In this document: one piece after another, positions 21,469-51,997 of the stretch
Layout: each line of letters opens with the position of its first letter
Numbering within the stretch: position 1 is the first letter of the stretch
Assembly (NCBI RefSeq): GCF_001194135.2
Contig: NC_068998.1
Location: 54,682,528-54,746,527 of the forward strand
Origin: Octopus bimaculoides
Lineage: Eukaryota
DNA length: 64,000 nucleotides
Direction: 5' to 3'
The notes under the pieces: generated by a model
What the model saw: only the letters and a program-made list of their open reading frames with translations
The model's database searches: none
Told to the model about the DNA's origin: nothing
Translations under genes and position numbers: made by a program

Positions 21469-21507
<39 letters not shown>

Positions 21508-21529
21508 CACTACTACCACTACCACCAAC

Positions 21530-21579
<50 letters not shown>

Positions 21580-22263: not shown

Positions 22264-22333
<70 letters not shown>

Positions 22334-27961: not shown

Positions 27962-28003
<42 letters not shown>

Positions 28004-32732: not shown

Positions 32733-32765
<33 letters not shown>

Positions 32766-33056
32766 GTACAAACAAACACGTATGCACATATAAATATATT
32801 TGTAGAAAATCTAAAATAATCGATCTTCAGATTTCCTGATAATTTGGTTATTTAGACTCGACTGGTATATCTTCTTGCAGTCATCTGCCAGAAATTGCTT
32901 CAGTATTTTAAGATGGCATTTACTCTGTCTATCCGTGATATTTTTAATTAAAATATTTCAAAAACATTCTCTTCTTCAGATCTTATCTCCCATAGCAACA
33001 AATTAAGCCTGTTAAAAGGTAATGCAAATAAATGTTGAATCGAGGATATCTGGTTT

Positions 33057-33089
<33 letters not shown>

Positions 33090-33468
33090 TTTTTCTTTAC
33101 CTTTTTTTTTTCTGTATTTCTTTCCTGCCAATTAGGTGGATAACAGCAAAGGAGCTAGTTATTATGTACCTTCGATGTTTCATCTACCACGAGATAACAA
33201 GAAGCTTCATCCAGGAAATTCAGATGTTGTCACCTTTTATTTAAATTTTCATGGATTCCTTCCAGGTAATTAACACAAATATCTTCATTTCCACCACCAT
33301 CGTCACCATCACCATTATCACTACTGTCATCAACATCATCACAGCCACCACCACCACCACTACCATCATCATCACCACCACCATTATCAGTAACACCTCC
33401 ACCACATTCCACTCTTGTCTAATTTTTCTGTGATGAAAACATTGTAATTGCCAGTATACAATTTTATT

Positions 33469-33505
<37 letters not shown>

Positions 33506-35666
33506 GAAAATTTATGTAATTTCATTTAAATTCATTTTCATTTGAACATCATTAGAAAATACAATGAAAAAAGAATTAGGAAAATGTTATTTTGGGGGGA
33601 AAACGAAATACTGTTGGAGGGTATTCAGTGCATGGATTCCAGGTAGAAACGGTTTGATGCAAAATGAATGAAGCCTGGTAATCGTCTGTGGTGACATGAT
33701 TCAATTCCGTGAAAAGCAAAAATGAAACGAGCAAACCATGTTTCATACTTTTTCTTCACACTGTACTCGCTTTGCTTTATAGATTGCATTCATTTTAACC
33801 TAACATTTTCCTGGATCCTGTTATAGACACGATATATATATATGTATATGTGTACACACGCATATACATATGTGTGTGTGTGTGTTAGAGTTATTTTAAA
33901 TGTGAAGTATGCAACCAGTAGGCATATTATGATGGCATGATAAGGGAACAATTGAATTTATGGAAAAGGAGTAATAAAAAGAAGGAAATCGTTGTGTGAT
34001 ATATAAAGGTTAATATATGCTTAAGATGGTATCAAACTGTTCTGGTGATCAGAAGCTATTGTCGATAACTGAGATGAAAACAAAAGACAGGTACAGTTGA
34101 TGAGCTGAAGGTTGGAGTCATTTGGAAGTGTTACCTTAACAATTATCGATATAAATGTATTTGAAAGTGTTAGTGGTTTAAGATATGAGCACCAGTCTAT
34201 CTAGAGAATGAACCCCTTTCATAGTTGAGGAGGAGATTGCAGTTTTGGACAAAGGCAGAAGCTAAATAACATTAAATTAGCTTTTGACTTTATGCATGAC
34301 ACCAAGCCAAGAAAGTGTATTTACGATGAAAATAATTCTGATGCTTTCAATGTTGAGGAATCTTTAAATTGGATTTCATTTATAAGGAATGGTGTTATTC
34401 TGGTTTAGCCTTTGATCAACCTTCATCAAGCTGGTCTACAATCACAATCATTCCTGTCGCAATTACCTTGGCTATTTTTTTGTGACATTGTATATCTTGG
34501 AGTACAGTATCCAGTGTGTCTTTTTTCTTTTTAAGATGGTTCAGTTTGGATTTAAAGTCGATTCAGCTGCTATTTCTAGCAGGACTGACGATCGCTTGAA
34601 TATCTACGTCTCTCTTTTGACTGGTGAACTCCAGTTTGCTTGCTTGGAAATTGTTGTATGATTTTTGTTGAAATGAAAGCTCATAGAGACAAGAGATTGT
34701 TAAGCTCTTAAGAGACAAGGATTAAAATGTTTTGGTTTAACTCTATTTTCAAATTAACATCATAATATTTCCATTTAGCCCGGCCGTATTTACTATCACC
34801 AGACTTTGTCCATCATTCTTACTGAATTAAGATCTTTTATAAACAACTATTCTCAACTGTTTACATCCATTACAAAACGATTGAGATGAGATTTATTATA
34901 TTTTTCAGAAGCATTATTTCACCGAATCTTAGCACACACCCTACATTGGTCTCAGGAATGTGGTGGCTCTGAGCCATATCTTTACTATCGAGTAGCTCGA
35001 CTTTTTCTTGATTCTGAACATGATTTTATTTTAGAAATGTTACCCAGTTCATATGCAAAGGTCAAGGTAACAAATATTTTTACTAAAGTTCACCATGTTT
35101 GCTCATTATTTTATTTATCTTTAAATTTTGTCGTAAAACATTTTTTTTAATAAAATTATTTCTATATCTATTTTTTCTTTCATTGGTTCGACAAATAATT
35201 GGTTTCAAATTTTGGCACAAGGCCAGCAATTTTGGGGTAGGGTTGAGTCAATTACATCAACCCCATTAATCAGCTGGTACTTATTTTTATCGACCCTGAA
35301 AGGATGAAAGGCAAAGTTGACCTCGGCAGAATTCAAACTCAGAACATAAAGACTGACAAAATGCTGCCAAACATTTTGTATCAGTGAAAGTGATAGGGAA
35401 GTGTCTGTGTAATTTGGTGCAGAACAAATGTCTCAAGGGATTTTGTTCACAAAAACTCTAGTTTTTCAGTCTTCTTGTCAATGTTTACATCCTTCAACTC
35501 AATATAGAAAAGCTACATATATCAAAGCACATTTAGGTTTACAAACAGAACATTACATCAATATACAATAGACAAATATATTGTGTGTGTGTGTGTGTAC
35601 ACTTGTATTGAAAGGACATTTTTTCTGACACAGGTAATGCTTTAATGATTCTGTTAATCCACACCC

Positions 35667-35720
<54 letters not shown>

Positions 35721-36005
35721 GTTTCAAATTTTGGCCCAAAGCCAGCAATTNNNNNNNNNNGGGGGGGGGGGGTAAATTGCTTACATCAACCCCAGTACTC
35801 AACTGATCCTTATTTTATAAACCTTGAAAGGATGAAAGGCAAAGTTGACCTTGGTGGAATTTCAACACAGGACATAAAGGTGGACAAAATGCCACTAAGC
35901 ATTTTTCCCAGCGTCCTATGGTTCTGCCAGCTCATCACCTTAATAATAATACTAATAGTAGTAGTAGTAGTAGTAGCAGCGCAACGTAACCAACCAAATA
36001 TCTAC

Positions 36006-36041
<36 letters not shown>

Positions 36042-39000
36042 GTGGCGAGCTGGCGGAAATGTTAGCACGTTGGGCAAAATGCTTAGCAGTATTTTGTCTG
36101 TCTTTATGTTCTGAGTTCAAATTCCACCAAGGTTGACTTTGCCTTTCATCCTTTCAGGGTCAATAAATTAAGTACCAGTTGTGTACTGGGTCGATCTAAT
36201 TGACTACCCCCCCATCCCCCCAAACTTTCAGGCTTTGTGCCTAGAGTAGAAAAGAGTGTATGTGTGTGTCCGTCCGTCCGTCCGTCCATGCAGTACAGTA
36301 ATGGAGATATCAATGATAAAGCAGTAATGCTGTAACATGCGAATAAACACTTCAGTTAATAAATTAGCTGCTTTCAGTTCGAGAGAGAGAACAAAATTAA
36401 CACCCTCATGCCGTTGAACATTTAAGTTAATTAAGTAAAAGATCTTAATTATTTGCTCCTACTATCAAAAAAAGATCTACTGTTCTAACGAGAATGCCTA
36501 GCTTCAATATTTAGTCACCATGTTTATATAAACCTCAAATACTGTTTTATTTTCAGCTTCAATTAATCTTGGAATTCTATTAGATTATTCTCTGAAGAAA
36601 AGTTATTGAACTTATCCGAGAACTCGGTTAAAACGTTGATAAAATATCTTTTATTTTCCGAATACTAAAATATAATAATGATAAAATGATTTCAAAGCTA
36701 GGAATTAGCCTGGATAAATTCCACCTAAATTCCTCTCATCTCTGTAACTGTATGACTTCTCTGACATGTTGGTGTTATTTCTAAGTCTTCACCTGGGTTT
36801 ATTTATTAGCAATTACTACTGTCTCCAGGTGTTCTATCCTATCAAAGGATTTGGAAATTTGTAAAATTAATTATGTAACTCGTACAGATTTCAGTAGTTT
36901 CATACCATTATCTGTTATGATTGATAGACAAGAAGAAAACCCACTTCTTATTGTATTGTTTGCTGTAATCTGTTTGTTTGCAGGTTGTTGTGATGCGTGT
37001 TGCAGAAGCCAGAGAAGAGGATGTTTATATTAGTGACAATGGACAGAAAGCTCCTCTTGTAACGAGCCCCCAAGCAGTGGCTAAGGTATTCATTTGTGTT
37101 GATAATATTCTCCTGTCAAAGCGAACCGAAGCTTACAAATCTGATCTTGATCACTGAGATGATTCAGGGACTGTGGATTCAAAGTGAAGATGGTTTTTAG
37201 AAATAGCCAACCAAATTATTAATTCAGTTCTATTATTTTGAATAGGGGTGTGGGGTGGAGAGAAGGGTGTAATTAAGACTTACCTTAGTTTAGTTTTAAT
37301 CATCATCATCATCATTTAATGTCCACTTTTCCTTGCTTGCAAGTGTAGACAGAATTTTTCTATGACTGGATGCCCTTCCTGTCACCAATCCTTGCCTGTA
37401 TCCTAGTGAAGTAATATTTCCCTGTGGTTAGATGTGATGTCAAGACAAGGGTACACATAAATACACAGACACACAAGCGCAACAAGATAAAAGATTCTTT
37501 CAGTTTCCATCTAGCCAACAGAGTCTTTGATTGATCTGGAGGTGTGGTAGAAGACATTTGACCAAGGTGCCATGGAGTGGGACTGAACCCAAAACCATAT
37601 GGCTGGGAAGGAAGCTTCTTAACCACACAGCCATGCTTGTGTCTCTTAATAATGCAGCTGAACTAAAAAAAAAAGGAAAACAGAGAGCATTGAAGACAAA
37701 ATTCAGTTTAGTTTAAATAATATTGAAAATTGGCTTTGAGCCAGAAAAGGGTCACAAATCTGGGGCTTATCTGAATTTCTGAGATGTTTAGTGACTGGAA
37801 ATACAAGACTTGCCCCTGGGCAGAACACCAGTACATTACAGGGTTAATGCACTGGTGTAAAGAGTAATGAAGTGCCTTGCTCAAGGACAGAATGTACCAC
37901 TCTATTCAAGAATTGAACCCTCAACCTGACAATCGTGTCCACTAAGCCATGCACCTTCACTTAAATAATGCAGTCAAGTGTCTTCCATTAATTTCCAAAA
38001 TTAATCCAAAGCATTGAAGAGTGTTTTTCTTTCTTTCTTTCGTTTGTTCGTTTGTCAATAGAATATTGTCTCACGAAAGGATTGCTTTTTTTATTTAAAA
38101 AATTTTTTAAATTAAGGGTTAAAAAAAGCCATTTTATATTTCAACAGGTACGTAATTTTTTGGACACAACACTTCTTCGACTGCGGGAAGTATGGATGAA
38201 ACGTATCTCCTACAGCACCAGTGTCAGTTGTCCGTGTGGCCAGTTATGTGATTTTCATCATATCAGTGGTTGTACGGCTGAGACTTGTCTTCATTTTCTC
38301 GATCTTGATGAATGTCTTAGCAAAAAGGTTAGTCTCCCTCACTCATTCCATGTTCATGGCACCCCACCCTTCCTTTTTTAACATTTTCTTGTCTGTTTTT
38401 TTTTTTTACATTTTTCTCTCCATCTACTGGTCTCAATCATTGGACTGTGACCATTCTGAGACAACATTTTCATTGGTCTTAATCATGGTTGTGTTGTTAA
38501 GAAACTTGCACTGTGTGAGACCTTGGGCAAGTGCTTTGTTTATATCCCCTTAACTTAGCTGCTTGACAAAAGTGACTGATAGTATAAGTACCAGACTGTG
38601 GTTGATTTGTTTGACTAATCCTTTCAAGGTGACACCTTCATCAGCCAAACTCTGTTGTGTTGTACGTGGTCTGTGGAATGCTGTCACCAACCCTCACCTG
38701 TTTTTCATCAAAATAATATTTTCCCTTTATCCTTTGAACACAAACAGCACCTGAGTAGGAAATGTTTTTAATGGTAGAATGCTTGTATCATGGTGATGTT
38801 GTTTACGATTATCATGGGACATCAAAACAAGACATGAACACATGCTCACATATAATAGGCTTCTTTTAGTTTCCCTCTCCCGAATCCTCTTTGGTTGGCC
38901 TGGGGTTTTAGAGAAGGTATTTGCCCAAGGTGCTGCACTGTGGGACTGAATCCAGGACCCTGGGATTGCAAAGCAAACTTCTTATCTGTGTGCTACATAA

Positions 39001-42000
39001 GCACACTAACCCCCATGTCAGTGCCTTAAAGAAACAAATATCTAAGTCTGAATATTTCTTTTGTGGATCTAAACACACATCCTCAGAATGTCCTGCATTT
39101 GGTCAAACATGTATTAAATGTGTGGAGTGGGGGGAAGAATCATTTTGAGGACAATATATAATTTAAGGAAATGGTTGAGGGAATTGAAGAAATTGAAAAT
39201 GAAGATTCTGCAAGTATTTGTGAAATTGGAATAAAAAATATAGAATGATGATTACGAAACTCAATAATGTTAACATTAAAGTGCCAGCCACATTGACAGC
39301 CAAGCAACTGCAATAGCTGAGAATTCCTGGATGGATTTGAATAAAGCAAAATTAAGAAAATGGGATTTCCAACTAAAACAAATTGATGGATCAGTCTTTG
39401 AGATTCTGGGAGAGTTTGATGCATTAATGGTAATTGGCAAGGAGAATAGAGAGAGATTGTGAGTGTCATTGTTGTAGAATGAAAAAAATAATAATAGCTT
39501 ATTGATCTGAACATGAAGAATGAATGTTGATTGTTCAACATTAATTCTTGAGATTGAAACCCCAAGATGATTTGAGAGATTAAGAGGTTTCATGGCTAAC
39601 ATCCTTCTCAAAGGTAATATGAAACCATGCTATTTTGAGGCAAAAACCATTATCAATACATGTTAAAGTAAGGAAATTAATTAATAAAAGATTTTAAGTT
39701 CTTCCTAGAAAGAATAAACGGATCCCTGATTTAATTAGTGGATAAAGAGATCTCAGAATATGAGGGATCTATAAATTAGGTGTAATGGAAAGAATTTGTT
39801 CAGGATCTTATCCATTCCCTAAATACTGGATTGAGTTTCGTTGTTTTCAAGTGAAGAATTATTTTGCCAAAATGGATTTAAAGGAAGCACATCAACAAAT
39901 TGAAATGTATTTTCAAGTAAGAGATGTTACACACCTATAAATACACCTAAGATTGTTTTTAAGGTGAACATGTTTCCAATATGGAATTAAAACAGGAAGT
40001 GCTACATTTTAGAGGGTCATAGAACATATTGTTGGAACATGGATAATTTCGTCTGTCTTTGTGTTCTGAGTTCAAATTCTACCAAGATTGATCTTTACCT
40101 TTCATTCTTTCAGGGTTGATAAAATAAGTACCAGTTATGTACTGGGGTTGATGTAATTAACTTACCCCTCTTCCCTGAAACTGACGGCCTTGTACCAAAA
40201 TTTGAATCCATTATTTATCAAGATTCTGTACAATCATAAAAAGTTGAAATTCTCAGGCCTGATGATCAAATGAGTTGGATCTGTGTTAGAAATTGGTGAA
40301 TTGTCTTTCCTTGGATAGAGTCTGACAGATGAAGATATATATCACCAGATTATCATTTAGCTGCAAGAATTATAGACATGAAAACTGACAAACGACAAGA
40401 AGCTATTAGAATCTTTTCTTAGACTTGTTAATATCTATGGAAGATTTAATGACCATTATTCAGATCACATATCACCGCTTAGAATCACTTTGTAAAACTG
40501 GTCTCCTGGTTTTTTGAAGAATCCTTCAACAAAACTCAACTAAGCAGATAAAAACTGCTGAAATCGTTATAGCTATTGGTTCAGATTTATAATATCACAA
40601 AAGAAGTTACGTCGAAAGTTGATGCAAATGAAAAAGCTATAACACAAGAAAAACTACCTTGTATTATGTTTGTCAACAACATTAACCACATCTAAAACAA
40701 GATATTCAAATATTGAGAAGAGGAAACCTGGGCAAATGTGTTCTGTATTCAAAGAGAATAGTATTTTCTGCCTGGCTGAAGATTTAAATTGTTCTCAGAT
40801 CATAAGAGTAAGTCTCACAAGAATATATATTTTTAACAAGCATTGTAGTTTATCAAAAGTGCTGTCTGCTTGGAATATGAGATGGGGTTCTCGAATAATA
40901 GGGTTTGGTTGTGAAATATCTTTGTAACAGGATCTCAGATATCATGTATTGATCTATTATCGCAATTGCAGGAATTAATTATGGTGGTGGAGGTGGGTTT
41001 TATCAATCTTTTATAAATTGATGGATTAAAATGTAGAAATATAACATTGAAAACTACCAATATTTTATTTAAAAGGACTTTTAATAATTATTTTTCCGTT
41101 TTAGAAAAGTTGTTTAATTCATTGAAAAAAAAAAATTAACAAAGCACAGGCTTGGCTGTGTGGTTAAGAAGCTTGTTTGGCAACCACATGGTTTCAGGTT
41201 CAGTCCCTCTGTGCAGCACATTGGGTATGTTTTCTACTATAGCCCTGACCAATGCTTTGTGAGTGAATTTGATAGATGCTTCTACTCCGTTTATCTCTAC
41301 TAAATTTTATTCATCAACGTTTGGTTGGTTTAAGGCTTTAGTAGAAGACACTCAGTTGGTCTCATACAACTGGGATTGAACTTGAAAGGATGGAGCTGCA
41401 AAGCGAACCACTTTACCAAGCAGCCATACTTGTAGCCGACATTTATTCTGGAGCAGACAAAGTGCAGTGGGTTGAATTATATGTATCTAATTCAACGGCT
41501 GAAGGAGATTTTGATCTTGTGATACTGTCATCAATTGTCCAGCAATGTTAACAGTATAATCATTTTGAATGTGAAGAGAAACTAGTTTAGACTGCTTTGA
41601 GAAAGCTTTCTCACAAATAATTGACAACAAAGGGTGAATAAATACAGACATAATAAGTATAATCGGTGTCTGAAAATCAACAGCATATTTACTTGAAAGA
41701 CCATTATAGCAAGACTTCAAGAGATCTTGTTTTGTTTTCAATGACAAAGAAAGAAAGAAAAATGTAAAAAGAAATGGAATTCTGGTCGACTTCAATGTGA
41801 AGATTCTTTGGCCAAGTTTAACCAGGAGAGACACTACTTATAATTTGCAGGAAACAACTTGAAGACAAATGGTAAATTATACATTTCAATGGAGAACATC
41901 ATTAAAACTATTTAGTAAACTATGTATAAAAGACATTTTCAATAAGGACACCTGTAATACTAGACACAAACAATTATCTCGCCTACTAACCCCTCCCCCC

Positions 42001-45000
42001 TGCCTCTGATATCAATAATTTAGGGAAGGCTTACATTTCATTTTGATAGATATCCTCTAATAGCTGAAATCTCTCTTTGTTTCTCTTCACCTCAACAATT
42101 TTACCTTTTTATTTCCATTTTACAGAATTCTTTCCTTTTTTTTTTATTGCAGTCTTTTACATTTCTCTGACTCTTCTTGTCTATTTGGCTCTTTTTTTTT
42201 AATTTCTTTTTCTTTTTTTTTTGGCTTAAGCAAATTCTATAGGGCTGGTCATTTTGTGTTGCTGCCCCCTCTGTATTCCCCACAAATGCTGTTGGTCAAG
42301 TGCTTCCTATTTCCCATGAGTAGGAAGCTGTTTTATGCACCACCTGCATCGGTTTCATTGCAGATGCAGTCATGGAAGCCATGTGCACGGAAAGCAATTA
42401 AATGTTTCAGTGAACCAACATCAATCTAGAAGGAATATGTCAATGATCCTTTTGTAAGAATGTAGGAATTCCACAGAGTTTGTTTGTTGTGGTTACAAAA
42501 ATGTTCAACAGCGTGGAATCTAATTTTGCATCAGAGACAATTACCAAAGACTGACCCACTCTCCTAGACACATCAATTAATATAACTAGTGACAACGTGA
42601 TTACTATAATTGCTGTACTAATAATCATGTAGTTATCTAAAAACCATTGTAATATTAGCCGTGGTGGAGCTCGGCTGAAAATATTTATATACACAGAACA
42701 CCTACATAGAGATAATAGTATTTACCTCAACTGTGGGACGTACAAAAAACCCACACAATATTTATTTCACCATCATCATCATTTTACTTCAGTTTTCTTT
42801 GCTGGTATGGGTTGGATAGGTTACTGCAGTGTCTGAGTCGGTTCTTATTTAGAATTACTGCTTTCCCAGATGGGTCAGAGGGGAAACACCTTTATCTTTC
42901 ATCTTTCTCTTGGTTTTTATGCCTCAATGCCCTTCTGGTCACCATCCACTTTATAAAACGTACTGGGTGCATTTTATTGTGGCTATTGACAGTAGAGAGG
43001 ATGCTATATTCTTATTGAAATATATAGAGAAAAACATCGACACACAGGGAAATAGTAATTTATCTCAGCACTTAAATATATTGAAAAACCTACAAAAAGA
43101 GAAGAGTATTTATCTCACTGCTAAAATATAGAGAAAAAAACCCTTTAAGATAATAGTATTTATCTTACCAGTAAAATATACAGAAAACCTGCATATAAAT
43201 ATCTTTACACTGAAATTTTCTTTAGAGGTTGAAAACTTGGAATAATTTCAACATTTATGTATAGAATAAGAGAAAGTATTTATCTAAAAGAAAAAAAAAG
43301 AAAAAAGGAAGTAAAATAAATAATAGAAAATGAATGAGAGATGTGAATATCAAAAGTCTACGTTTGTTAAAGAGTCTTTTTATAGAGAAATAAAATAAAA
43401 TATCAACAAAAAGTCACATGAAGTTTCTGGAGGGAGTTAATTGTTAACTTGGATGATTTTTTTCATGGTGTGAAACAGATGGTGAGAGATAATTCCCCTG
43501 TTGGTAACATTCTCAACTGATGATGGCCATAACAGCTGAACTGGGATAATGTTGAGTAAAATGTCCCACTCACAAATAAAATGAACTTCTTGAGACAGAT
43601 TTGAACTTGTCACCTTTACACATACACTTTGTTAAATTGTCTCTTATTTTTTTTTATTACTTTTTCCTTAAACAGGTTATTTGTTGTGGCCATCGCCGGA
43701 TGAAAACAACATTCGTTCAAAAATGGTTCCCTCCCCACCACACAGTTGGTGAGTGCTTTTTTTTTCTCATGTTTCTGAGTAAAAAATGCCTTAATTGTTT
43801 ATATTATTTGCTTGTTAGAGTGAAACACAATTAACTATATTGGTAGACTTAAATGTTTTATACTTTAACTAAGATGGGAAGGTATGGGCCCTTAAATAAG
43901 GACCAAATGGGGAGAGGTGCAGCATCTACCTTATACATCAAAATCAGCAACTCAGTTTTTGAATCCATAAGGAACAGACACACTACACACACACATACAT
44001 GCACAAACTCTGTTATATATTTANNNNNNNNNNTATATATATAAAGAGAGAGAGAGAGAGAGAGAGCAGCTATATCTTGAAATAAACCATTTTCATTACA
44101 CAAAGCTGTTAGATTCAGTTTCAATTTGAAGTGAATTTAAGAACTTTGGCTGTTGTTGCACATCTCTTGTACAATGTTGTTGCTTCAGTTTCACCACACA
44201 GTCTCACACCAAACCATTTTCTAGACTTGTACAACTCCAAGGTGTGTGAATGCATTTCAAATGGGGTCCTTCTTGACCCTCTGATTGGCCTCTCAGAAGC
44301 TGCGATACATAAACAGGTACCTACCATGAGAATTAGGGTACAGTTTTTATAACAGTTTGAGAGGTACCTTCCATGGATGAAGATAGTGTCAGTATAAATG
44401 TAAGGTGGTATCTTTTTGTGTGTGTGTGTCCATGTCAGTTAACCAGTGTCATGATTATAGAGTGCTCTCTTATGTCTCATCACATAGCAATTAGACAAAT
44501 AGAGATTGATGAGATGATTGCCAAACTGAAATATGTACTGTGATCCATACAATCCACTAAAACTTTCCTAAATGGTGCTCCTGTATGGCCACAGTCACTG
44601 ACCAAAACCAGTGAAGCACTAAAGTAATTACACCCAATAATTAGCTTCATATTGGTAATTGCTGTAAGCTTTATTAATTGTAATTATTATTTTGTTTGTT
44701 TGTTTTTTTTATTGTAAAAGCCTTGAAGAAGACAATCCTTTCCAACAGTTTATTAGAATCGACAAAAGGTAACTTTGAGAAAGAAATAACAGATTTGCCT
44801 TATTGGATCAAAAGTGCTGCCAAGTTATTAAATAATGGAGTGGAAAACCTAGACTGGGTCTGTTTAGCCAATTATTTGGGTAAGAACACAAGAGAAAATT
44901 ATTATTGTTGTTGGATGTGTCTGATACTTGGAGAAAAATTTGATTTCTTCTGCTCTGTAATCGATTGCCTAACTTCAGTTTGCTACATGTTCACTACCAC

Positions 45001-46718
45001 ATGGTTACTTGTGAGTAGATTTGGTAATCAGAAATTGACTGAAGCCTGCCATGTATATATATCGGTGTGTGTGTCCTTGTTTTGGTTTTACATGTTTGTT
45101 GTAAATGAATGTCATTCATTTCCAATCTTCTGCAAAAGCATGTCTGACCATGAATCTAGCATCCCCACCCAGCTCAAAACAATATCTGTTTATCGTGATT
45201 TCTGGGTTATTTCCCATCATCAGCACAGAATAATTGTTCGGCTAGAGGTGGTGCTGCCAAATTCCCATTCGAAATATATAGTTTTCAAAGTGACAACAAG
45301 TCACTGATCTATAAATTAGAAAATTACTATTTTTAAATCTCACAACGAGAGATATTAGCAACAGTACTTTGGAGTAAAGATTGTTTGCCTTGTTTGAAAA
45401 TATAAGGACACAGATCGTGTCGTATAACCAGCTGGAGACGATGTCTCCTGGGGCTAAATTACAGCAACATTCGTCCTAAACCAGGACTGCCATGTTATGT
45501 TGGCAAACAATCTTTACTACAAAGTATTGTTGCTGAATATCTCTTGTTGTGAGATGTACAAATAGTAATTTTCTAACAGTGAATGTCGTTTTTATGGGTT
45601 TAAATATTCCTCAAGCATCTTTGAATTGGTAACGAATTTGTATTTGTACCTGTTACTGATTAGTGCAGTCACCCTGTATTATATAATTAGTATTGTAATT
45701 GAACATTTTATATTAAGTGTAAAAAAAAAAATGCTCTTAAATTCACAGTCTCCTAAATTTGTTGTCAATTCAGGTTATAAGAAACCGAAAATCGATAAAT
45801 TTAATAATGATTTAAATCCATCACTTGCTCTGCTCACTGACTGGATTCTTGGCAGCGGCAACACACAGGTGTCTGTGGATGTATTGCACACTTTCTTGGA
45901 GAAAATGTCCAGGTATGACATCATAGATCTTCTGAAACAAAGCAGAGGTAAGTACAAAAAAAAAAAAGATAAAGAAGATAAAATTTTTAAAATAAGTAAA
46001 TAAAATGTAAATAAATAAAGGTATTGTTTTGATAATGTGATAATATATTTAATTAAATCTTTCAAAGTAGCAGATTAGCAAAATCATGTCAGGACCTTTA
46101 GATTAAATGCATTTATTTGATTAGGCTCTGTGTATACTTTGGAAGCAGCAGTAGTAGTAGTAGTAGTAGTAGTGGTAGTTTACTGTTCTTCTCTTACCCC
46201 TCCCCCCTTCTGATGAGGTCAATTGTCTAAAAAAATTATAATTATATTAACGATTGCTAATTTCTGTCATTTAGATAATTTACAATAGCAAATGTGTTTT
46301 GCTTTTCCAGAACAATCCCACTGCCCACAAGTGTTTATCAGTTACCAGTGGGACAGTCAAGATGCAGTGAAGGCCCTGTGGGACAGGCTGGAAAGAGCCG
46401 GAATCTCTTGTTGGATGGACATTGGCCAGATGGGTGGTGGTGACCAGCTCTATAACAAGATTGAACAAGGAATTCGGAATTGCAAGGTGAGACACATCTA
46501 CTTGGCATTTTGAATTGTGTGTATGTTGCGGGGAGGCCAATATCCATAACGTACCTCTCCTCCAAATTTCAAGACTTCAGCTTTTGTTAGAAACAATTAT
46601 TTGGGGCAGACGACTGGATAATGCTTTGGCAGGATTCCTGGAGCAGCAGATGAAATGCCTTCTGCTATATAAACAGCATTTGTTCATCCTTTCGGGGTCG
46701 ATAAATTATAGTGGAAGG

Positions 46719-46774
<56 letters not shown>

Positions 46775-48251
46775 CATCATTATTACTAACAAATTCCATC
46801 TGACCCATGCAAGTATGGAAAAGTGAACGTTAAAAGCAGACATTAAATGATGATGATGATGATAATGATGTTCCTGGTGGAGTGGAATTGGTAAGTTTTG
46901 AAAGAGATTTACTTAGAAGTGGAGAGTCAAGTGCAAAGCAATCTTTGCATGGAGATGCTTCCAGAACGATCATGTTTGAGAAGTGGGAAAATGGACGATT
47001 CTGTTTTGTTGCTAACGAAGAATCTAACTTTGATTGCTTTGAAATTGAATTCAGTTTAATTCTTTTAAGTTGTAATTAATAATCTTTCGTTATTAATTGA
47101 TAATTTCATAATTGTGCTTAATCTGAAATGTTCTTTGATATCTTCTTTATATTCCGTTTGCTTCCATGGCTCTTTTAATGATGTTCTACTCATATGTGTT
47201 ATGGATGCAAGCACTTAGCTTATGCCACAACCATTTGTGTAATTTATCTTCGTTAATAAATGTGTTCAACTTGACGACTCATTTAATTGTCAAACTCCAT
47301 ATTCCTTGACTTTTTGAGTCTTGTCTTCTTTTTACCTTTTATCTTTTACTTGTTTCAGTCATTGGGCTGTGGCTATGCTGGAGCACCACCTTGAAGGGTT
47401 TCTTTTAAAGCCTGGTACTTATTCTGTTGCTCTCTTTTGTCAAAACTCTAAGTTACAGAACGTAAACAAACCAACACCAGTAGTGGGGGAACAACAACAA
47501 CAAAGAGACATACACAAAACACACATATATATATGAAAGGCTTCTTTCAGTTTCCATGAACCAAATTCACTCTTGAGGCATTGGGTAATCCTGGGCTATA
47601 ATAGAAGACATTTGCCCCAAGTACTACACAGTGGGACTGAACCTAAAACCGCATGGTTACTAAGTAAGCTTTTTAACCACATAATAGATTTCGTTAATAA
47701 TAATTTTACATCCAGTTTTCCTTGCAAGCCATCAGATGCAACTTGTGCATTATGTGAAAATAGTGCACTATGTTGCACTAATGATTATCTCACTTCTTAA
47801 ATAAACTAATATTGACCAATAACTTACATTGTTTCAATGTCCTCTCCGTCGTTGCATAATTATCTAAGAGTGACAATATTCTCTCCTCTGCCTTTCATTC
47901 TTTTAGAATTAATTCCTGGAATCAATTTAATAATCCTATAAAGCATTTCTTACATCTCAACATAATTTTAATTAGAAGACTAACTATTGTTTTTTCAAGC
48001 AGATGGCTTCCCTGAGTAACTTGACAGTACAGTCTGCTATTTTGCTCCCAAGACACTATCTTCGAATTCTGCTCTCAGTGAACTCTTTACAAGATATACC
48101 AATATTTACTGTTTATTTTATTCCATTGGGTTTTTTTTTTTCATAAAGTAAATATATTTGCTTCTTGCAAGTCTCTTTGTTTTTTGTTTTTGTTTTTCTT
48201 TCATTGTTAACCAGTGACCTTTGGTGTCTTGGTGTTGTATAAGTAGCAGAA

Positions 48252-48289
<38 letters not shown>

Positions 48290-51200
48290 CCATGCCAGCA
48301 TGGTAAATGTGTGTGAAATGCTGGTGGTGCACGTGTGTGTGTGTGTACACACATGACCCATACCAGCATGGAAAGCTGACATTAAATGCTGGTTTTATAT
48401 ATATATATATGTATATATATATATTGTAAATAGGTGCATCTCAGAACTGATTTTATATCTATAAAGATAAACTTTGACATTCAGCAGAAAATATCTTTTC
48501 GAGTTTAACTCTCACTTGCTATAAAAAAAACAACAATTCCAGAAAATACACACAAATACAAGAACTTCACCAATTTCTCTGCTAAGCAGTCACAAGAGGT
48601 TACCTTCCTCCAAAACATTTCCAAAAGCACATGCAGATATTTGAAATGAAGACACCCACAATCCAACTGAAGACGAAAGAAAAGTGAAGGTCATGGTTAG
48701 AATAGCTTTAGCCCTAGGTCTGCTCAATCTGGGTAGAGTTGGTGAAAAATGACAATCACAATCCAGTTACTCTTTCAAGAAATTCTGATCTTCCATATTA
48801 TTTACACCTGAAAAATTTTGTGTTTTTCTATTTGCATACTCTAAGGCATTATTAAAATAATAGTCTTAAATATTTGTGTGTGTGTGTGTGTGTGTGACTG
48901 GAATAAAACCAAAAAAGAAAAACCTAAATAGTAAGTTTTCCATGTTCAGAATCTGATTAGTTTAATGCAGCTACTTCTATTGAACAGATTTTAATGGATG
49001 CTCTTCCTCCTCCTCCTCCTCCGTTATCTCATTCATACACTTCTTCGTTCTCTTTCCTTCTCCTGATTACTTTAATCCGTGCTGTTCAACGAAGATTGTA
49101 TAACAATAGCATATTAACCTTCCCCCCCCCCCATTTGTTATTATCACATTGTCTTCTCGTCACAACCTTCTCTCATGGAAAAAGAAATAAAAATTAAAAA
49201 ATTGATTCGTTTCTATTGGAATCGTTTACTGGGTTCTAGCTGAACACAAATCATCGTTCTATTATATTCCCATCCAGCTCATTATATCGACAGCATTGCT
49301 TTCTTGTCTTTGTGTGTGTTGCTTCCTTTTGTAGACCATGTTACGTTACTGAAAAATATCAAACGTCTGAAGCATGCCTCACACAACCTGCCGCCATTTA
49401 CTTCTGATATCATTAGAGACAAGCATCATACGCAAACGCCTTGCCACTTTCCTAGCAAATCTCAGACCCTGTGCCAATGTAACAAATTGATATTTGTGGA
49501 ATTCAATGAGTTTCCTTCATCAAAAGAACTTTCACTATAGTTTCTTCCCTTCTGCTAAAATTCAATAGAAATCTCCAATGTCCGTTGTGTCAGTCTTTAT
49601 ATCACTGTGTCACTTCTTTCATTTCTCATACGGCTCTTCACAATAGTTATTTACTTTGGTACGACACACATTTAAAGACAACCAATACAAACTGTTCAAT
49701 TGTTCTCAAGACATTTCAGTAATTTCTTTATCAAAATCCCTCAACAGTTGAAATACAAAGTCAACAAAAGTGGGATTTCAACCACAAATTGAAGCTAAAT
49801 TTACTCCACTATTCTGTAATGATGATGATGATGATGATGGTTACAGTTTTTACTTCTTCGTTGCTCTCATAATAGAGATATTTCTCTTTTATATATATAA
49901 AAAAATTGTGTTCCCCTCCCCCCTCCTGCAATTGACCCCAAATAGTTTTCCCTTTTGTTTTTTCTGTCTCTGCCAACAATTATTAATTTTACTGTTTATT
50001 TCAGTTTTTCATCATTTTTTTTCTTAAATACCACATTCCTCTTACCTTCTCTGCCACTTCCTCCTCCTTCCCTCTATGCTTTCCTCTCACCCCCCCCCCA
50101 CTATCCCCATGTCACTACACTCCCATCCTTGCTCACCTCTACACACTTCCCATCTTACATTGATACCCTGCACACACCACTTCACCCCTTCCTATCCCCC
50201 TTCATAGAACCATATACCCATCTGGCCCCAAATCCCTTCTTTCTCCAACTCCCTTTTCTCATTTTATTTTATTTTTTCAACCACTTTTCCTCTTTTTATT
50301 TTTATTTTCACTTTTTCTTCTGATGAGGGACTTGTGTCCAAAATATCAAGACTCTTTCCCTTTTTTTTTAAGCATTAAACTAATACATTTGTTAAAACTT
50401 GTCCATCCTGTGTTGTCTTCGATTTTTTGTGCTCACTGCTGCCTTCTGCATTCATACAACCCACCTGCAATTACTGAGACCAAGTTATTTGTTCGTTAAG
50501 AGAGGACATTACTTTTTTAAGGCCAATACTCTCTCTTCCCAGTGATTTGCAGAAGATTTATACAGGACTCACCTCAAATGTCTTTAAAAGACATTATAAA
50601 CAGGTTTGTTTTATGAGTCTATGAACCTCTCTAAGTCGCATGGAGCCAGGTCAAACTGCTATCAAATATATTATGTGTGTGTGTGTTTTAAGTGGCTGTC
50701 ATGACTTTCTTCTCTCATTTCATTTTAGATTATATTGGCCTGCGTTACACCCAAGTATGTCATATCTCATCTCTGCAACCGCGAACTGAGCTTAGCTGAT
50801 GGTCTGCGGAAACCTATCCTCCCTGTGATGTTTGAAAGTATCGTCTGGCCTCCACCGGGTGGCATGGCACTCATCTTTTCCAACCTTGTATATATTGACA
50901 TGAATGGTTAGTTTAATTATCAATTAGTATGGTTTATAATTTGGTGGCGGTGGTGGGGGAGTGAAAAACGAAATGCTGGGCTCAGTCAAAGTCAAGTGAC
51001 CCACTTTAGATGCATCTAAAGTAGAAGCCAATGAAAGAGGATGATGTTTAGCTCTCTCCCTCTATGTCTTAATGCAAATACATTGTGGAAAGGCAAATTA
51101 ATTGCAGCATTTGTTAGGATGTCATATCTTTTACGGACACGCTCTTTATAAAAACAAATCTATATCAGTAGTAGACAAAACATGTCCGGCAGTGGCAGTG

Positions 51201-51997
51201 AGAATGGTAAATGTGCATTCCTGCCTGTTTTGGATTTGGTTAGTCGGATGTACCAACTGTTGACCACAAGCTAAGACAAAATCTGACATCACTGATATAA
51301 AAAAAAAACAGGGATTAAAAAATCACTGATGTTGCATTTAACCACTCAGCCAAACAAAAGTGGCAAACATCGATGTACAGAATTTTAGTGACATTTTTGT
51401 GATATTGTCTCTACATCTGGAACAACCTGTTGTTGATGGAACTCCATATCTATCTTGTGCAGCATAAACTGATCAGTTGAGAAGAACAGGCCTACTGTTC
51501 AATCACTGATTGATTCTGAAATTCATTGATTGTCATTGATGAAAGTATAGGGCTCAGAGCATTTGTTAAACTTGTTTCTTGGTTAATCTGACCCAAACTA
51601 TCTTATCTTTTAACTTACCAATAATCTTCATCATTTTGCAGGTATTGGGGGACACGGAAGCTCAGGAATGACTGCTGACTTGGCGGATAAATATAAGGAG
51701 ATTATCCACCGAATTTCACATTATTTTATTAACGATGAGAATAGTAAAAGTACAACAGAATCCAAATCATTTGTTCCCAGTTCTGTAAAATCCAATCAAA
51801 CTAGTAATGAAGTTAACGAAGTCACTCCATCTATAGAAACAACACATGAGGAACATCATGTAGGTTCATTGAATCCTCACCAAGAAATGAATGAACAATT
51901 GACCATACATAACAGCAACCATCCAAGAACTCTATCCAGAACTAATGTGGCTAGGACGACATCTCGTTGGAGATGTGGTCTATGTAATGTATTATAA
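3911..51997 (+). CDS. Multi-exon gene model: NHR-Roc-COR-Death-TIR(-CaaX) ROCO protein, about 1234 aa visible, 20 exons
   Basis: All 20 exons have canonical AG/GT ends and matching phases; summed length 3705 nt = 1235 codons including stop. In-frame TGA at 3899-3901 upstream of ATG 3911. The only weak junction is exon 5 to exon 6, where an exon is probably missing. Confidence 0.9.
6721..7188. repeat. (CT)n microsatellite flanking N-gap 6766-7158
   Basis: Direct reading of the sequence. Confidence 0.95.
8354..8700 (-). mobile_element. tRNA-derived SINE family C, near full length
   Basis: Reverse complement of the family C head (A/B boxes, ggttcagtyccactg, ccttgggcaagt-like core) and its tail ending atgactgaaacaagtaaaaga. 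Confidence 0.8.
8813..8975 (+). CDS. Exon 2: Roc G1/P-loop
   Basis: TTTTAG|ATG...CAAAA|GTAAGA. With phase 1 it reads DDTPKEIFVRGEAAIKAYEKACCSGSEAVYRTRLMLVGKDRVGKTSLKRSLLGQ (GxxxxGKT). The ORF track shows another frame. Confidence 0.93.
9384..9456. repeat. 20-bp minisatellite, about 3.7 copies
   Basis: Unit ttcttacctgctccaatacc starts at 9384, 9404, 9424 and 9444. Confidence 0.95.
11408..11745 (+). mobile_element. tRNA-derived SINE family C
   Basis: gggttcagttccactgcatggcattttgggtaagcgtcttccactatagcc...atgactgaaacaaatgaaag. Other partial copies: 19303-19368(+), 19505-19765(-), 24130-24310(-), 28530-28670(-), 37480-37640(-), 41147-41275(+), 41325-41435(-), 47325-47680(-), 56815-57040(+), 58548-58760(+). 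Confidence 0.8.
11757..11845. repeat. 32-bp minisatellite, about 2.8 copies
   Basis: Unit tttacttaccttrtttyattaatctaccttaa starts at 11757, 11789 and 11821. Confidence 0.92.
12511..12680 (-). mobile_element. RTE-tail element (family A), 3' end
   Basis: (CAT)n-cgtttaatgtccattttccatgctggcatgggttgg is the reverse complement of the family A tail. Confidence 0.8.
15331..15716 (+). mobile_element. RTE-tail element (family A) with internal subrepeats
   Basis: Repeated ggtggcacataaaaagcacc / gactggc blocks, then ttggcgttaggaaggg...aacccatgccagcatggaaagcggatattaaacg(ATG)n. Other copies: 14853-14952(+), 18083-18352(+), 31651-31830(-), 52906-53178(+), 55006-55175(-). Confidence 0.85.
16282..16436 (+). 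CDS. Exon 3: Roc switch I (G2) and start of insertion
   Basis: TTACAG|A...ATTG|GTAAAT, phase 2 to 1. Reads KDDQPLESTDGVDLSESCSFNTSDSKAWRL...; STDGVD is the Roc switch-I type motif. Confidence 0.9.
16553..16679. mobile_element. 127-bp Tc1/mariner-type MITE
   Basis: 29-bp TIRs CAGGGTGGCCACAAGGTCTGGGTGCATGG / CCATGTACCCAGACTTTGTGGACACCCTG (3 mismatches), flanked by TA at 16551-52 and 16680-81. Confidence 0.85.
19124..19251 (+). CDS. Exon 4: Roc insertion
   Basis: CTCTCAG|GT...AAA|GTAAGT, phase 1 to 0. Reads GGVAALEEEFTDSTALNVYLEMVLHQKEKELKNKNNFQKNDKK. Confidence 0.85.
20185..20755 (-). mobile_element. RTE LINE 3' end (ORF C-terminus, 3'UTR, (GAT)n tail)
   Basis: Minus strand: HMDKDICVKKCRSLTVERTCGRGRPRKTWNEVVKHDLRTLGL, a typical RTE C-terminus, followed by the family A tail. 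Confidence 0.88.
21164..21448 (+). CDS. Exon 5: insertion end and Roc G3
   Basis: CCCACAG|ACA...CAG|GTAGGA, phase 0 to 0. Ends VTLDIWDFAGQAVYYTTHQ, the classic Roc WDFAGQxxYYxTH motif. Confidence 0.95.
21471..22332. repeat. (TAC)n and (GT)n microsatellites flanking N-gap 21580-22263
   Basis: Direct reading of the sequence. Confidence 0.95.
23303..23448. repeat. 35-bp minisatellite, about 4.2 copies
   Basis: Unit tgtgttggcaacatttggtyaatgagttgatggtt. Confidence 0.95.
23500..23760. mobile_element. Palindromic MITE-like element
   Basis: Outer inverted ends aatatgcttgaggcac / gtgtctcaagcatatt; inner 49-bp inverted repeat 23575-23623 vs 23676-23724 (46/49). Confidence 0.75.
25380..25700 (+). mobile_element. 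tRNA-derived SINE family D
   Basis: Head gaaggcacatggctcagtgg...gagttcaattccc...gtgtccttgagcaagac. Related heads at about 32300-32530(+) and 37860-37960(-). Confidence 0.65.
25810..25995 (+). CDS. Exon 6 (visible): Roc G4 region
   Basis: EDQTVENMSNLGYIDYWMKSIHAHS...SPPMFIVGTHRNSL...KQM|GTAAGT. The acceptor is uncertain: AAG at 25807-25809 (phase 0) or TAG at 25785-25787 (phase 2). Confidence 0.82.
26544..26758 (+). mobile_element. tRNA-derived SINE family B, full length
   Basis: A-box tggcagagtgg, B-box gagttcaaattc, core gttgactttgcctttcatcctttc..ggtcgataaattaagtaccag. Other copies: 13465-13645(-), 16712-16900(-), 25225-25322(-), 35200-35380(-), 35719-35937(-), 36044-36255(+), 40050-40212(+). 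Confidence 0.85.
27143..27262 (+). CDS. Exon 7: Roc G5 region
   Basis: TTGCAG|GTG...CAG|GTTTGA, phase 0. Reads VKEKFNALEEFLIGKPYYKHIIKPFFAVENYGSEDEEDVQ. Confidence 0.9.
27725..27868 (+). CDS. Exon 8: Roc end / COR start
   Basis: TTTTAG|ATT...CAG|GTAGGT. Reads ICLLREHIQKVALQEPYMGEKIPTRWLQFEDII... (COR IPxxWL motif). Absent from the ORF track. Confidence 0.92.
29852..30061 (+). CDS. Exon 9: COR-A
   Basis: CTCAG|GTG...CAA|GTAAGT. Reads ...MLDFYHDLGVIIYYGG...LVILNLQWLVEMFRRVIT (COR FxHDLGxIxY and VIxxxxWL motifs). Confidence 0.93.
31471..31629 (+). CDS. Exon 10: COR-A
   Basis: TTACAG|GAT...AAG|GTAGGA. Reads ...LEKYGLLDEQLINYLW...LLGLLQKFDLICKRIPSK. Confidence 0.92.
32575..32790. repeat. Compound (TA)/(TG) microsatellite
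   Basis: Direct reading; it produces the spurious YI/HT-rich ORFs. Confidence 0.95.
33136..33265 (+). CDS. Exon 11: COR-A/B junction
   Basis: ATTAG|GTG...CCAG|GTAATT, phase 0 to 1. Reads VDNSKGASYYVPSMF...FYLNFHGFLP. Confidence 0.9.
34909..35066 (+). CDS. Exon 12: COR-B
   Basis: TTTTCAG|AA...AAG|GTAACA, phase 1 to 0. Reads EALFHRILAHTLHWSQECGGSEPYLYYRVARLFLDSEHDFILEMLPSSYAKVK and continues the FLP-E-xLFHR motif. Confidence 0.9.
36984..37085 (+). CDS. Exon 13: COR-B
   Basis: TTGCAG|GTT...AAG|GTATTC, phase 0 to 0. Reads VVVMRVAEAREEDVYISDNGQKAPLVTSPQAVAK. Confidence 0.83.
38148..38327 (+). CDS. Exon 14: COR-B end and Cys/His cluster
   Basis: CAACAG|GTA...AAG|GTTAGT. Reads VRNFLDTTLLRLREVWMKRISYSTSVSCPCGQLCDFHHISGCTAETCLHFLDLDECLSKK. 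Confidence 0.9.
39050..40970 (+). mobile_element. Decayed Ty3/Gypsy gag-pol remnant (intron 14)
   Basis: Motifs in order, broken by stops and frameshifts: Zn-knuckle CGSKHTSSECPAFGQTCIKC (about 39060), RT YFAKMDLKEAHQQIE (about 39860), INTPK, YGIKTGSATF*RV, YQDS (40216), RNase H TTSKTRYSNIEK (about 40690), DLLSQL (about 40955). Confidence 0.8.
43676..43748 (+). CDS. Exon 15: end of Cys/His cluster
   Basis: AAACAG|GTT...GTTG|GTGAGT, phase 0 to 1. Reads VICCGHRRMKTTFVQKWFPPHHTV. Confidence 0.88.
44721..44879 (+). CDS. Exon 16: linker and Death domain N-half
   Basis: T-rich tract, GTAAAAG|CC...TTGG|GTAAGA, phase 1 to 1. Reads ...LPYWIKSAAKLLNNGVENLDWVCLANYL (DWxxLAxxLG death-fold motif). Confidence 0.88.
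45774..45947 (+). CDS. Exon 17: Death domain C-half
   Basis: ATTCAG|GT...AGAG|GTAAGT, phase 1 to 1. Reads GYKKPKIDKF...PSLALLTDW...SVDVLHTFLEKMSRYDIIDLL (LLxxW and LxxxxRxD death-fold pattern). Confidence 0.9.
46311..46486 (+). CDS. Exon 18: TIR domain N-half
   Basis: TTCCAG|AA...AAG|GTGAGA, phase 1 to 0. Reads QVFISYQWDSQDAVKALWDRLERAGISCWMDIGQMGGGDQLYNKIEQGIRNCK (TIR_2 VFISY and WxD..GG motifs). Confidence 0.95.
50020..50440 (+). mobile_element. Penelope-like element remnant with decayed hammerhead motif
   Basis: Long pyrimidine-rich tract followed by tcttCTGATGAgggacttgtgtccAAAATATCaaga, matching the minimal type I hammerhead layout described for PLE pseudo-LTRs. Confidence 0.5.
50729..50906 (+). 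CDS. Exon 19: TIR domain C-half with conserved Glu
   Basis: TTTTAG|ATT...AATG|GTTAGT, phase 0 to 1. Reads IILACVTPKYVISHLCNRELSLADGLRKPILPVMFESIVWPPPGGMALIFSNLVYIDMN. Absent from the ORF track. Confidence 0.95.
51642..51997 (+). CDS. Exon 20: TIR end, low-complexity linker, CaaX terminus
   Basis: TTGCAG|GT, phase 1. Reads GIGGHGSSGMTADLADKYKEIIHRI...RTTSRWRCGLCNVL* with TAA at 51995-51997. Confidence 0.9.

Follow-up and report, generated by a model that had tools for sequence, protein, structure and literature searches.

We examined a stretch of 64,000 nt from Octopus bimaculoides (RefSeq assembly GCF_001194135.2, contig NC_068998.1, positions 54,682,528 to 54,746,527 of the forward strand), hereafter called the window, which carries the gene LOC106875913. 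The product of this gene is annotated as an 'uncharacterized protein' (XP_052830315.1, 1264 aa) and has the domain architecture NHR-Roc-COR-Death-TIR. Its C terminus is formed by a predicted prenylation signal, a CaaX box, which is the subject of this report. XP_052830315.1 matches the window with 100% identity in 20 coding blocks that run from an ATG at 3911 to 51994. Two sea-slug-type Roc-COR-Death-TIR proteins (P0092 and P0093) map colinearly onto 8812..51718, which indicates that these blocks belong to a single gene. The window as a whole is ~35% G+C and contains introns, microsatellites, and seven runs of N. The coding features upstream of the C-terminal tail are listed below by window position.

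3911..4378, forward strand: first coding exon, which begins with the ATG and encodes the NHR domain (Pfam Neuralized, 1.9e-35)
8812..27262, forward strand: Roc GTPase domain in six coding blocks (Pfam Roc)
8812-8976, forward strand: Roc block with the P-loop GKDRVGKT
16283-16438, forward strand: Roc block with switch I
19126-19251, forward strand: Roc block
21164-21451, forward strand: Roc block with DFAGQ
25834-25998, forward strand: Roc block with GTHRN
27146-27262, forward strand: Roc block
27725..43747, forward strand: COR region and Cys-rich connector in eight coding blocks (Pfam COR-A, 7e-18; colinear with P0092, P0093, and P0181)
27725-27871, 29855-30061, 31471-31632, and 33139-33264, forward strand: COR/connector blocks
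34908-35069, 36987-37088, 38151-38330, and 43679-43747, forward strand: COR/connector blocks, continued
44720..45947, forward strand: Death domain in two exons, 44720-44881 and 45774-45947 (Pfam Death, 3e-8)
46310..46487, forward strand: TIR exon 1 (VFISYQWD...; Pfam TIR_2, 3e-24)
50729..50908, forward strand: TIR exon 2, with a conserved Glu (..LCNRELSLAD..) at the catalytic-Glu position of enzymatic TIRs
51641..51727, forward strand: start of the last exon, with an invariant GGHG-x-x-G-x-x-AD loop and the last TIR helix (alignment columns G232-D242)

In the full protein, a Roc domain (Pfam Roc, 9e-11) stands directly before the COR domain (COR-A, 6e-18), which is the arrangement that defines ROCO proteins. 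The last exon (51641-51997) is preceded by the acceptor sequence ttttgcag, which ends immediately before 51641, and the C-terminal tail is in frame with the start of this exon. Orthologous proteins from other phyla continue uninterrupted from the preceding exon into the last one (..YIDMNG followed by IGGHGSSG..), and this lends support to the last-exon structure.

Translation of positions 51920-51997 on the forward strand, where the codons read CAT CCA AGA ... TGT GGT CTA TGT AAT GTA TTA TAA, yields HPRTLSRTNVARTTSRWRCGLCNVL followed by the TAA stop, and the other two frames contain many stops in this interval. The end of the tail can be written as ...RTLSRTNVARTTSRWRCGLCNVL; the last ~30 residues of the protein are ..HNSNHPRTLSRTNVARTTSRWRCGLCNVL, and the final ten are RWRCGLCNVL. 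An initial annotation made from the DNA letters had reported an ending of C-N-V-L-stop. This ending is borne out by the translation and by RefSeq XP_052830315.1, which is the same protein as P0181 of our profile search. An AATAAA signal is located at 52050-52055, 53 nt past the stop. The tail comprises the following features.

51728..51925, forward strand: disordered, acidic linker of ~66 aa, rich in S/T/N/E, that extends from the TIR domain to the putative lipidation motif (assigned from predicted disorder and low identity)
51923..51973, forward strand: basic, acid-free segment PRTLSRTNVARTTSRWR with five Arg residues (assigned from composition)
51974..51976, forward strand: upstream Cys1258 of the C-x-x-C, preceded by Arg, a candidate palmitoylation site
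51983..51994, forward strand: CaaX box C-N-V-L with Cys1261 of XP_052830315.1, a predicted geranylgeranylation site
51995..51997, forward strand: TAA stop immediately 3' of the CaaX box

Past the last TIR helix, the tail spans 89 aa, and the linker within it is polar and of low complexity. Its first 66 residues are 55% S/T/N/E, with 10 acidic and three basic residues, and its last 23 residues include five Arg and no acidic residue. In an AlphaFold2 model of the 347-aa C-terminal piece, the predicted local distance difference test (pLDDT) scores for the linker (residues 262-339) range from 29 to 43 and are all <50, and the Death and TIR domains are modeled confidently. Because the linker is predicted to be disordered, the terminal motif should be accessible to a transferase, and the linker could act as a long flexible tether.

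With Val at a2 and Leu at X, the CNVL box fits the type of sequence recognized by geranylgeranyltransferase I (GGTase-I). The rule for this enzyme is an aliphatic a2 residue and Leu, Ile, or Met at X, and human GGTase-I accepts CKVL and a broad range of CaaL/I/M boxes (PMC11152559). The earlier identification of Leu at X as a GGTase-I signature is textbook knowledge and stands. Asn is unusual at the a1 position but acceptable, since the CNIL box of human GBP2, which has Asn at the same place and departs from CNVL in a single conservative exchange, has been proven to direct geranylgeranylation. The GBP2 box is prenylated in cells in a manner sensitive to a geranylgeranyltransferase inhibitor, is required for membrane fractionation, and on its own directs green fluorescent protein (GFP) to Golgi membranes (PMC2998424).

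One Cxxx ending taken alone is insignificant, however, and the decisive evidence for the octopus protein is comparative, drawn from the sequences of its relatives. Unprenylated proteins with a Cys-x-x-x ending make up a few percent of all proteins, and the octopus ending might likewise have arisen by chance and be without function. A broad definition of the Cxxx ending takes in 1207 human Swiss-Prot entries (PMC11152559). Moreover, the Asn at a1 is non-aliphatic, and there is a measurable base rate among ROCO relatives that lack a TIR domain, where 4/57 proteins have a Cys at position -4. The following comparisons were used to evaluate this explanation.

The CaaX Cys is present without exception in the 15 named orthologues, which come from seven phyla. 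The groups represented are Mollusca, Nemertea, Annelida, Arthropoda (Chelicerata and Myriapoda), Echinodermata, and Cephalochordata, with species assigned through cluster look-ups. The molluscan orthologues are from Octopus (two, including Octopus sinensis), Dreissena, Saccostrea, and Elysia, and further representatives are from the nemertean Tubulanus and the annelid Lamellibrachia. Arthropods contribute proteins from the spiders Argiope, Larinioides, and Parasteatoda, the ticks Ornithodoros and Rhipicephalus, the mite Panonychus, and the centipede Strigamia, and the remaining examples come from the starfish Asterias and the amphioxus Branchiostoma. Every complete NHR-Roc-COR-Death-TIR orthologue retrieved ends in C-x-x-C-a-a-[L/I/V], and all seven full-length hits that were scanned (representatives of 50% clusters) combine this architecture with a CxxCaaX end (7/7). 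Among ROCO-type relatives, the motif is absent only from a partial mite model, which comes from a 6-kb contig.

The sequence between the TIR domain and the motif presents a very different picture. Mean pairwise identity among the 15 orthologues is 0.58 for the TIR domain and 0.48 for the last eight residues, but it falls to 0.07 for the linker of ~65 aa that separates them. At the two cysteines, identity reaches 1.00 (CaaX Cys) and 0.87 (upstream Cys). The upstream Cys lies three residues before the CaaX Cys in 14/15 orthologues and two residues before it in the oyster Saccostrea, where the arrangement is CxC. Likewise, in an alignment of 17 sequences (alignment A1), C341 and C344 are invariant and the linker between TIR domain and tail is unalignable. 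The expectation that orthologues would keep a terminal CaaX despite divergence of the linker is therefore well supported, and the condition that the initial annotation named as a refutation, orthologues devoid of the terminal Cys, did not arise.

The basic residues near the motif are less well preserved. The five Arg of the octopus tail are dispersed across 16 residues and do not form a contiguous Lys/Arg run of the K-Ras4B/Rac1 polybasic type, and orthologues usually keep just one basic residue, located directly before the first Cys. Of the second membrane signal proposed in the initial annotation, the conserved upstream Cys with a single basic residue before it is retained, but an Arg-rich or polybasic stretch is not a conserved component.

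The comparison can be extended to a larger collection of relatives, which was assembled with a profile built on the TIR domain alone and searched against 1.84 billion cluster representatives. Because the profile contains only the TIR domain, the tail was unable to bias the ranking of relatives. The counts cover collected proteins with a complete last TIR domain plus the tail after it. A Cys at -4 is present in 87/123 single-TIR relatives and in 69/81 double-TIR relatives, or 156/204 in total. Compared with the 4/57 observed for TIR-less ROCO relatives, which served as a control set, this difference is highly significant (Fisher p = 3e-22). Among 158 positives, a2 is I, L, or V in 150, and X is L in 93, M in 32, I in 17, and S in 11 (153/158). 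A word-indexed homologue search returned neither the window's own protein nor any cephalopod sequence, but the exhaustive profile search did. Of the 91 homologues that the word-indexed search found for the piece spanning Death, TIR, and tail, the majority end in Cys-x-x-x, and the closest end in C-x-x-C-a-a-X. With a Cys at -4 that is invariant in the orthologues beside a linker of 7% identity and frequent in the wider collection, an a2 residue that is I/L/V in 95% of positives, and an a1 Asn that works in the CNIL box of GBP2, conservation excludes a chance ending, and we give this explanation very little credence.

Conserved cysteines can of course be retained for other reasons. The two CxxC cysteines of the ROCO-TIR orthologues could constitute a metal or redox motif, such as an intermolecular zinc site to which each of two dimerizing tails contributes one half, in the manner of the Rad50 zinc hook, and this proposal is consistent with the conservation of both residues and with the fact that ROCO proteins work as dimers. 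However, paralogues of the ARM-Death-TIR-TIR type and other TIR relatives keep a single Cys, always at -4, with an aliphatic a2, L/M/I/S at X, and a lead-in rich in K and S. Furthermore, a metal site has no need for a fixed spacing to the stop codon, the Saccostrea protein carries CxC rather than CxxC, and alignment A1 reveals no conserved partner Cys/His pair in the linker. We consider this proposal highly unlikely.

A C-terminal PDZ-binding motif or other short linear docking motif is another explanation for a conserved protein end, since hydrophobic endings such as -V-L and -I-L resemble class II PDZ ligands. The critical P-2 position is nonetheless highly variable (N, S, T, V, E, or A), and PDZ recognition leaves the invariant Cys at -4 (P-3) unexplained, which leaves this explanation with next to no probability. 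The zinc-hook, redox CxxC, and PDZ-ligand readings were all rejected on the same grounds, namely that the one universal feature is the Cys at -4 alone.

Prenylation, in comparison, accommodates both what is constant and what varies. The identity of X shifts between subfamilies, from L (geranylgeranyl type) to M or S (farnesyl type), while the position of the Cys remains constant, and this pattern points to selection for prenylation itself. The X spectrum of L/M/I/S and the aliphatic a2 correspond to the residues accepted by farnesyltransferase (FTase) and GGTase-I (PMC11152559). Judged by these sequence comparisons, CNVL is probably a functional prenylation signal; we are less certain about which enzyme acts, about the palmitoylation, and about the membrane that is targeted. 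The initial annotation had also proposed that this ROCO-TIR protein is lipid-anchored to a membrane, and orthologue conservation supports this proposal, with lipid attachment and localization as predictions.

The mechanism that we envision has three steps. First, cytosolic GGTase-I would add a C20 isoprenoid to Cys1261, as suggested by Leu at X, Val at a2, and the GBP2 CNIL precedent. Second, the residues -NVL would probably be removed and the new C terminus methylated at the endoplasmic reticulum (ER) through the RCE1/ICMT pathway. Third, Cys1258 would probably be S-palmitoylated to provide the second signal, with nearby Arg assisting, as occurs in H-Ras, N-Ras, and RhoB. The outcome would be a large Death/TIR signaling protein, regulated by Roc-COR, that a geranylgeranyl group, probably together with a palmitoyl group, attaches to the cytosolic side of a membrane at the end of a flexible linker of ~65 residues. 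Tethered in this way, the TIR and Death domains could meet membrane receptors or oligomerize in two dimensions.

The lipid need not serve as a stable anchor. GBP1 and small GTPases keep their prenyl groups sequestered before they are activated, and the octopus tail might similarly be a regulated handle for a GDI- or PDEdelta-like chaperone or for autoinhibition. Related variants of this idea are that FTase modifies the protein or that the upstream Cys is unpalmitoylated. GBP2 lacking CNIL appears like wild type by microscopy, though it is gone from the membrane fraction (PMC2998424), and CaaL/I/M sequences can be cross-prenylated (PMC11152559). On the other hand, a conserved second Cys beside a prenylated Cys is the classical arrangement of two-signal, stable membrane binding. 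Overall, we regard a prenylated tail that is other than a stable geranylgeranyl anchor with a palmitoylated second Cys as unlikely, although a regulated handle or a farnesyl variant is inseparable from the simple anchor model on present evidence.

Several observations weigh against a lipid-anchored octopus protein. The octopus sequence is the most divergent immediately upstream of the first Cys, where it reads TSRWRC in contrast to (V/E)-Q-V-x-V-x-[K/R/Q]-C elsewhere, and palmitoylation of Cys1258 is proposed by analogy. In addition, about one-quarter of the relatives with an apparently complete C terminus have no Cys at -4. Most of these non-carriers, judged as a group, are draft or partial models or belong to a separate clade of short TIR-only proteins. 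Finally, an Octopus vulgaris model (CAI9735787.1) exits the last exon after ..THEEHH and ends ..SLTWES without a CaaX box. This model diverges from the octopus consensus exactly at a GTAGGT sequence, at ~51859 of the window's last exon, and either an isoform that lacks the anchor or an annotation artifact is a possible source of its ending. The alternative tail, ..KRNGRSLQHRNSLCQFVLSGIYKESKSLTWES, has no match in the window better than E = 0.5, and with no counterpart there it was treated as a model- or species-specific 3' end rather than a conserved isoform. The O. sinensis protein and both O. bimaculoides models retain ..RWRCGLCNVL.

Since Roc-COR-Death proteins without a TIR domain mostly lack the motif and ARM-Death-TIR-TIR proteins have it, these sequences indicate that the CaaX motif tracks the TIR module and not the ROCO module. 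For example, echinoderm Roc-COR-Death proteins that lack a TIR domain stop directly after the Death domain and have no motif. A Patiria miniata protein of this kind (P0102) differs from its echinoderm paralogues in ending with a polybasic stretch and a CaaX-like box (..RSTQKRRCRCLVS), which may be an independent gain.

Proteins with the architecture ARM-like-Death-TIR-TIR (P0148-P0176 and others) end with a Ras-like, K/S-rich lead-in followed by a CaaX box, as in KSKSCVIL, KSKTCNIL, KKSKTCSIL, KKSSMCTLL, and KRTSKACVLM. They were found in Antedon, Patella, Haliotis, Nucella, Aplysia, Tubulanus, Dreissena, Mizuhopecten, Dimorphilus, and Saccoglossus. According to PMC6836662, proteins of this kind make up ecTIR-DC family 6 of Gerdol et al. 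2017, and that paper predicts a cytosolic family 6 protein on the basis that it has no transmembrane segment or signal peptide. The motif is also present on some amphioxus ANK-TIR proteins and on many short TIR-only proteins. Furthermore, it is carried by a large double-TIR group of environmental sequences in which X is mainly Met (farnesyl type).

Taken together, these distributions incline us, by a modest degree, toward a broader proposal. C-terminal prenylation would be ancestral to and defining for a large bilaterian clade of SARM1-like TIR signaling proteins that was lost in vertebrates and that includes NHR-Roc-COR-Death-TIR, ARM-Death-TIR-TIR, ANK-TIR, and short TIR-only proteins. Members of this clade would be previously unrecognized lipid-anchored TIR hubs on endomembranes, and among them would be the first prenylated ROCO GTPase.

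A 309-aa protein (P0090) from a 3.3-kb contig is labeled 'MAG: TIR domain-containing protein [Sedimenticola sp.]', yet it ends ..SKSSKSCSIL like the animal family, and it is probably host DNA binned into a metagenome-assembled genome rather than a bacterial CaaX protein. The tails of P0070 and P0246 read ..KSKSCTLLWFSIKYL and ..SQACYILWFRIKT, respectively. In these two cases, a TGA codon after the CaaX box was probably read as Trp by the metagenome gene caller, which would leave hidden CaaX endings.

The TIR domain itself resembles those of SARM1 and of bacteria. By Foldseek, the octopus TIR matches SARM1, TIR-1, TRR-2, MyD88, and plant TIRs with a probability of 1.00. Its fold is nearest to SARM1 and TIR-1, with MyD88 lower in the search. 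In sequence, the nearest entries in a PDB search were Cat1, bacterial TIRs, Hydra TRR-2, and SARM1; hits of the last three kinds passed the threshold of E <= 0.01, and no MyD88 chain did so. The order Death-TIR is that of MyD88, but the preceding NHR-Roc-COR domains argue against assignment as a MyD88 orthologue. The Glu of ..LCNRELSLAD.. is invariant (E189 of alignment A1) and aligns with ..DWCWDEL.. of Cat1. Non-enzymatic TLR TIRs carry an equivalent Glu, and the octopus TIR may be either an NADase or a scaffold. A glycine-rich loop, G-[V/I]-G-G-H-G-G-x-G-x-x-A-D, lies between the last TIR strand and helix (window 51641-51690) and is invariant in all ROCO-TIR orthologues; we know of no described function for this loop in TIR domains.

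Parts of the octopus protein have well-studied counterparts. It shares the Roc-COR tandem with LRRK1/LRRK2, DAPK1, MFHAS1, and the echinoderm Roc-COR-Death proteins, and with DAPK1 and the echinoderm relatives it shares a Death domain placed after COR. It has no kinase or LRR, and it additionally carries NHR and TIR domains. A CaaX box is not known from any of the four human ROCO proteins. The closest solved animal TIRs in both fold and sequence are those of SARM1 and Caenorhabditis elegans TIR-1, and SARM1 likewise has a Glu at the catalytic position. Unlike the octopus protein, however, SARM1 is organized as ARM-SAM-SAM-TIR, has N-terminal mitochondrial targeting, and has no CaaX box.

Counterparts of the tail come from other families. 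Human GBP2 (CNIL), GBP5 (CVLL), and GBP1 (CTIS) are also large GTPases with a C-terminal CaaX box, and they act in cell-autonomous immunity. In contrast to the octopus protein, the GBPs are dynamin-like, lack Roc-COR, Death, and TIR domains, have no conserved second Cys, and exhibit no sequence relationship to it. H-Ras, N-Ras, and RhoB follow the same two-signal logic in a disordered tail, C-x(1-4)-C-a-a-X, with basic residues nearby. Their tail is attached to a 20-kDa GTPase, whereas that of the octopus protein belongs to a 1264-aa protein whose Roc domain lies ~800 residues away.

Among TIR adaptors, TRAM/TICAM2 uses N-myristoylation and TIRAP/Mal uses a motif that binds phosphatidylinositol 4,5-bisphosphate (PIP2), and both illustrate the principle of lipid-linked recruitment of a TIR adaptor to membranes. 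The octopus anchor is predicted to be a C-terminal isoprenoid instead of the N-terminal myristate of TRAM or the phosphoinositide motif of TIRAP. As far as we are aware, known lipid targeting of TIR adaptors is limited to N-myristoylation (TRAM), phosphoinositide binding (TIRAP), and palmitoylation. If the prediction is correct, a ROCO-Death-TIR protein that carries a deeply conserved prenyl anchor of its own would be a third solution.

The domain architecture has been described previously. The Aplysia immunome includes NHR-ROC-COR-Death-TIR, and LOC101861518 of Aplysia californica, which has the same architecture as the octopus protein, was called MyD88-like with a ROCO domain (PMC9334734 Fig. 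6). LOC101850562 of the same species, a member of ecTIR-DC family 6, is among our collected relatives and ends ..KRTSKACVLM. Other TIR-ROCO fusions were reported in surveys of sea anemones (PMC5094078). A C-terminal CaaX box is unmentioned in PMC9334734 and PMC6836662, and we found no report of a natural TIR-CaaX protein in the literature searched, although prior notice in Gerdol et al. 2017, the source of the ecTIR-DC family definitions, which was outside the reach of our search, is possible. What appears to be new, if the sequence evidence is read correctly, is a prenylated ROCO protein and a prenylated TIR adaptor or enzyme. The finding is not categorically new, as it involves textbook chemistry and a gene with an existing RefSeq entry.

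Signaling by MyD88, SARM1, and TLRs, as well as LRRK2 in connection with Parkinson's disease, has been studied intensively, and membrane location is central to the function of these proteins. LRRK2 reaches membranes indirectly, via prenylated Rab proteins. Should the octopus protein and its relatives carry their own anchor, the working assumption for orphan TIR proteins of invertebrates would change, including ecTIR-DC family 6 and the Aplysia MyD88-like protein that are now annotated as cytosolic (PMC6836662, PMC9334734). There would also be a parallel to the prenylated vertebrate defense proteins GBP1/2/5 and OAS1 p46. This would fit an emerging theme in which prenylation places innate immune effectors on membranes used by pathogens.

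Some aspects of the Roc domain deserve separate mention. The O. bimaculoides RefSeq model reads ..YYTTHQV followed by TLNELPLFLVLCMNLTFSHIYSKSLLFLK.. (25723-25833), and at the position of TLNELPLFLVLCMNLTFSHIYSKSLLFLK the O. sinensis and O. vulgaris proteins and all other orthologues have a conserved Roc strand, FLSSRAVYVIVFNICDDL. Motif scans and relaxed tblastn searches for the exon encoding this strand (FLxxRxxYxxVFNL) did not find it in 21451-25834. The absent exon most likely lies in a 684-N assembly gap at 21580-22263, and the RefSeq model probably took in intronic sequence in its place. The replacement of Asp by Asn at Roc G4 (GTHRN) was considered as a peculiarity of octopus and rejected, as Asn is common among orthologues. 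In spider orthologues (P0292/P0298; Argiope, Parasteatoda), a simple pattern search detected no canonical P-loop, DxxG, or GTHxD, all of which occur in the proteins of the tick and of other taxa. Spiders may have a degenerate Roc domain together with a preserved CxxCaaX tail.

The window also harbors repeats and remnants of retroelements. At least seven copies of a short interspersed nuclear element (SINE)-like repeat of ~270 bp are distributed over the two strands, with 80-99% identity, mostly in the introns of the gene and just downstream from it.

52890-53160, ~12527-12564, 14853-14931, 15330-15703, 18120-18335, 20288-20363, and 55019-55177, both strands: SINE-like repeat
3-371, reverse strand: reverse-transcriptase fragment at the start of the window, a retroelement remnant
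38912-39937, forward strand: retroelement remnants in the intron between the COR exons, with a CCHC gag-like stretch and a reverse-transcriptase-like stretch (..FAKMDLKEAHQQI..)

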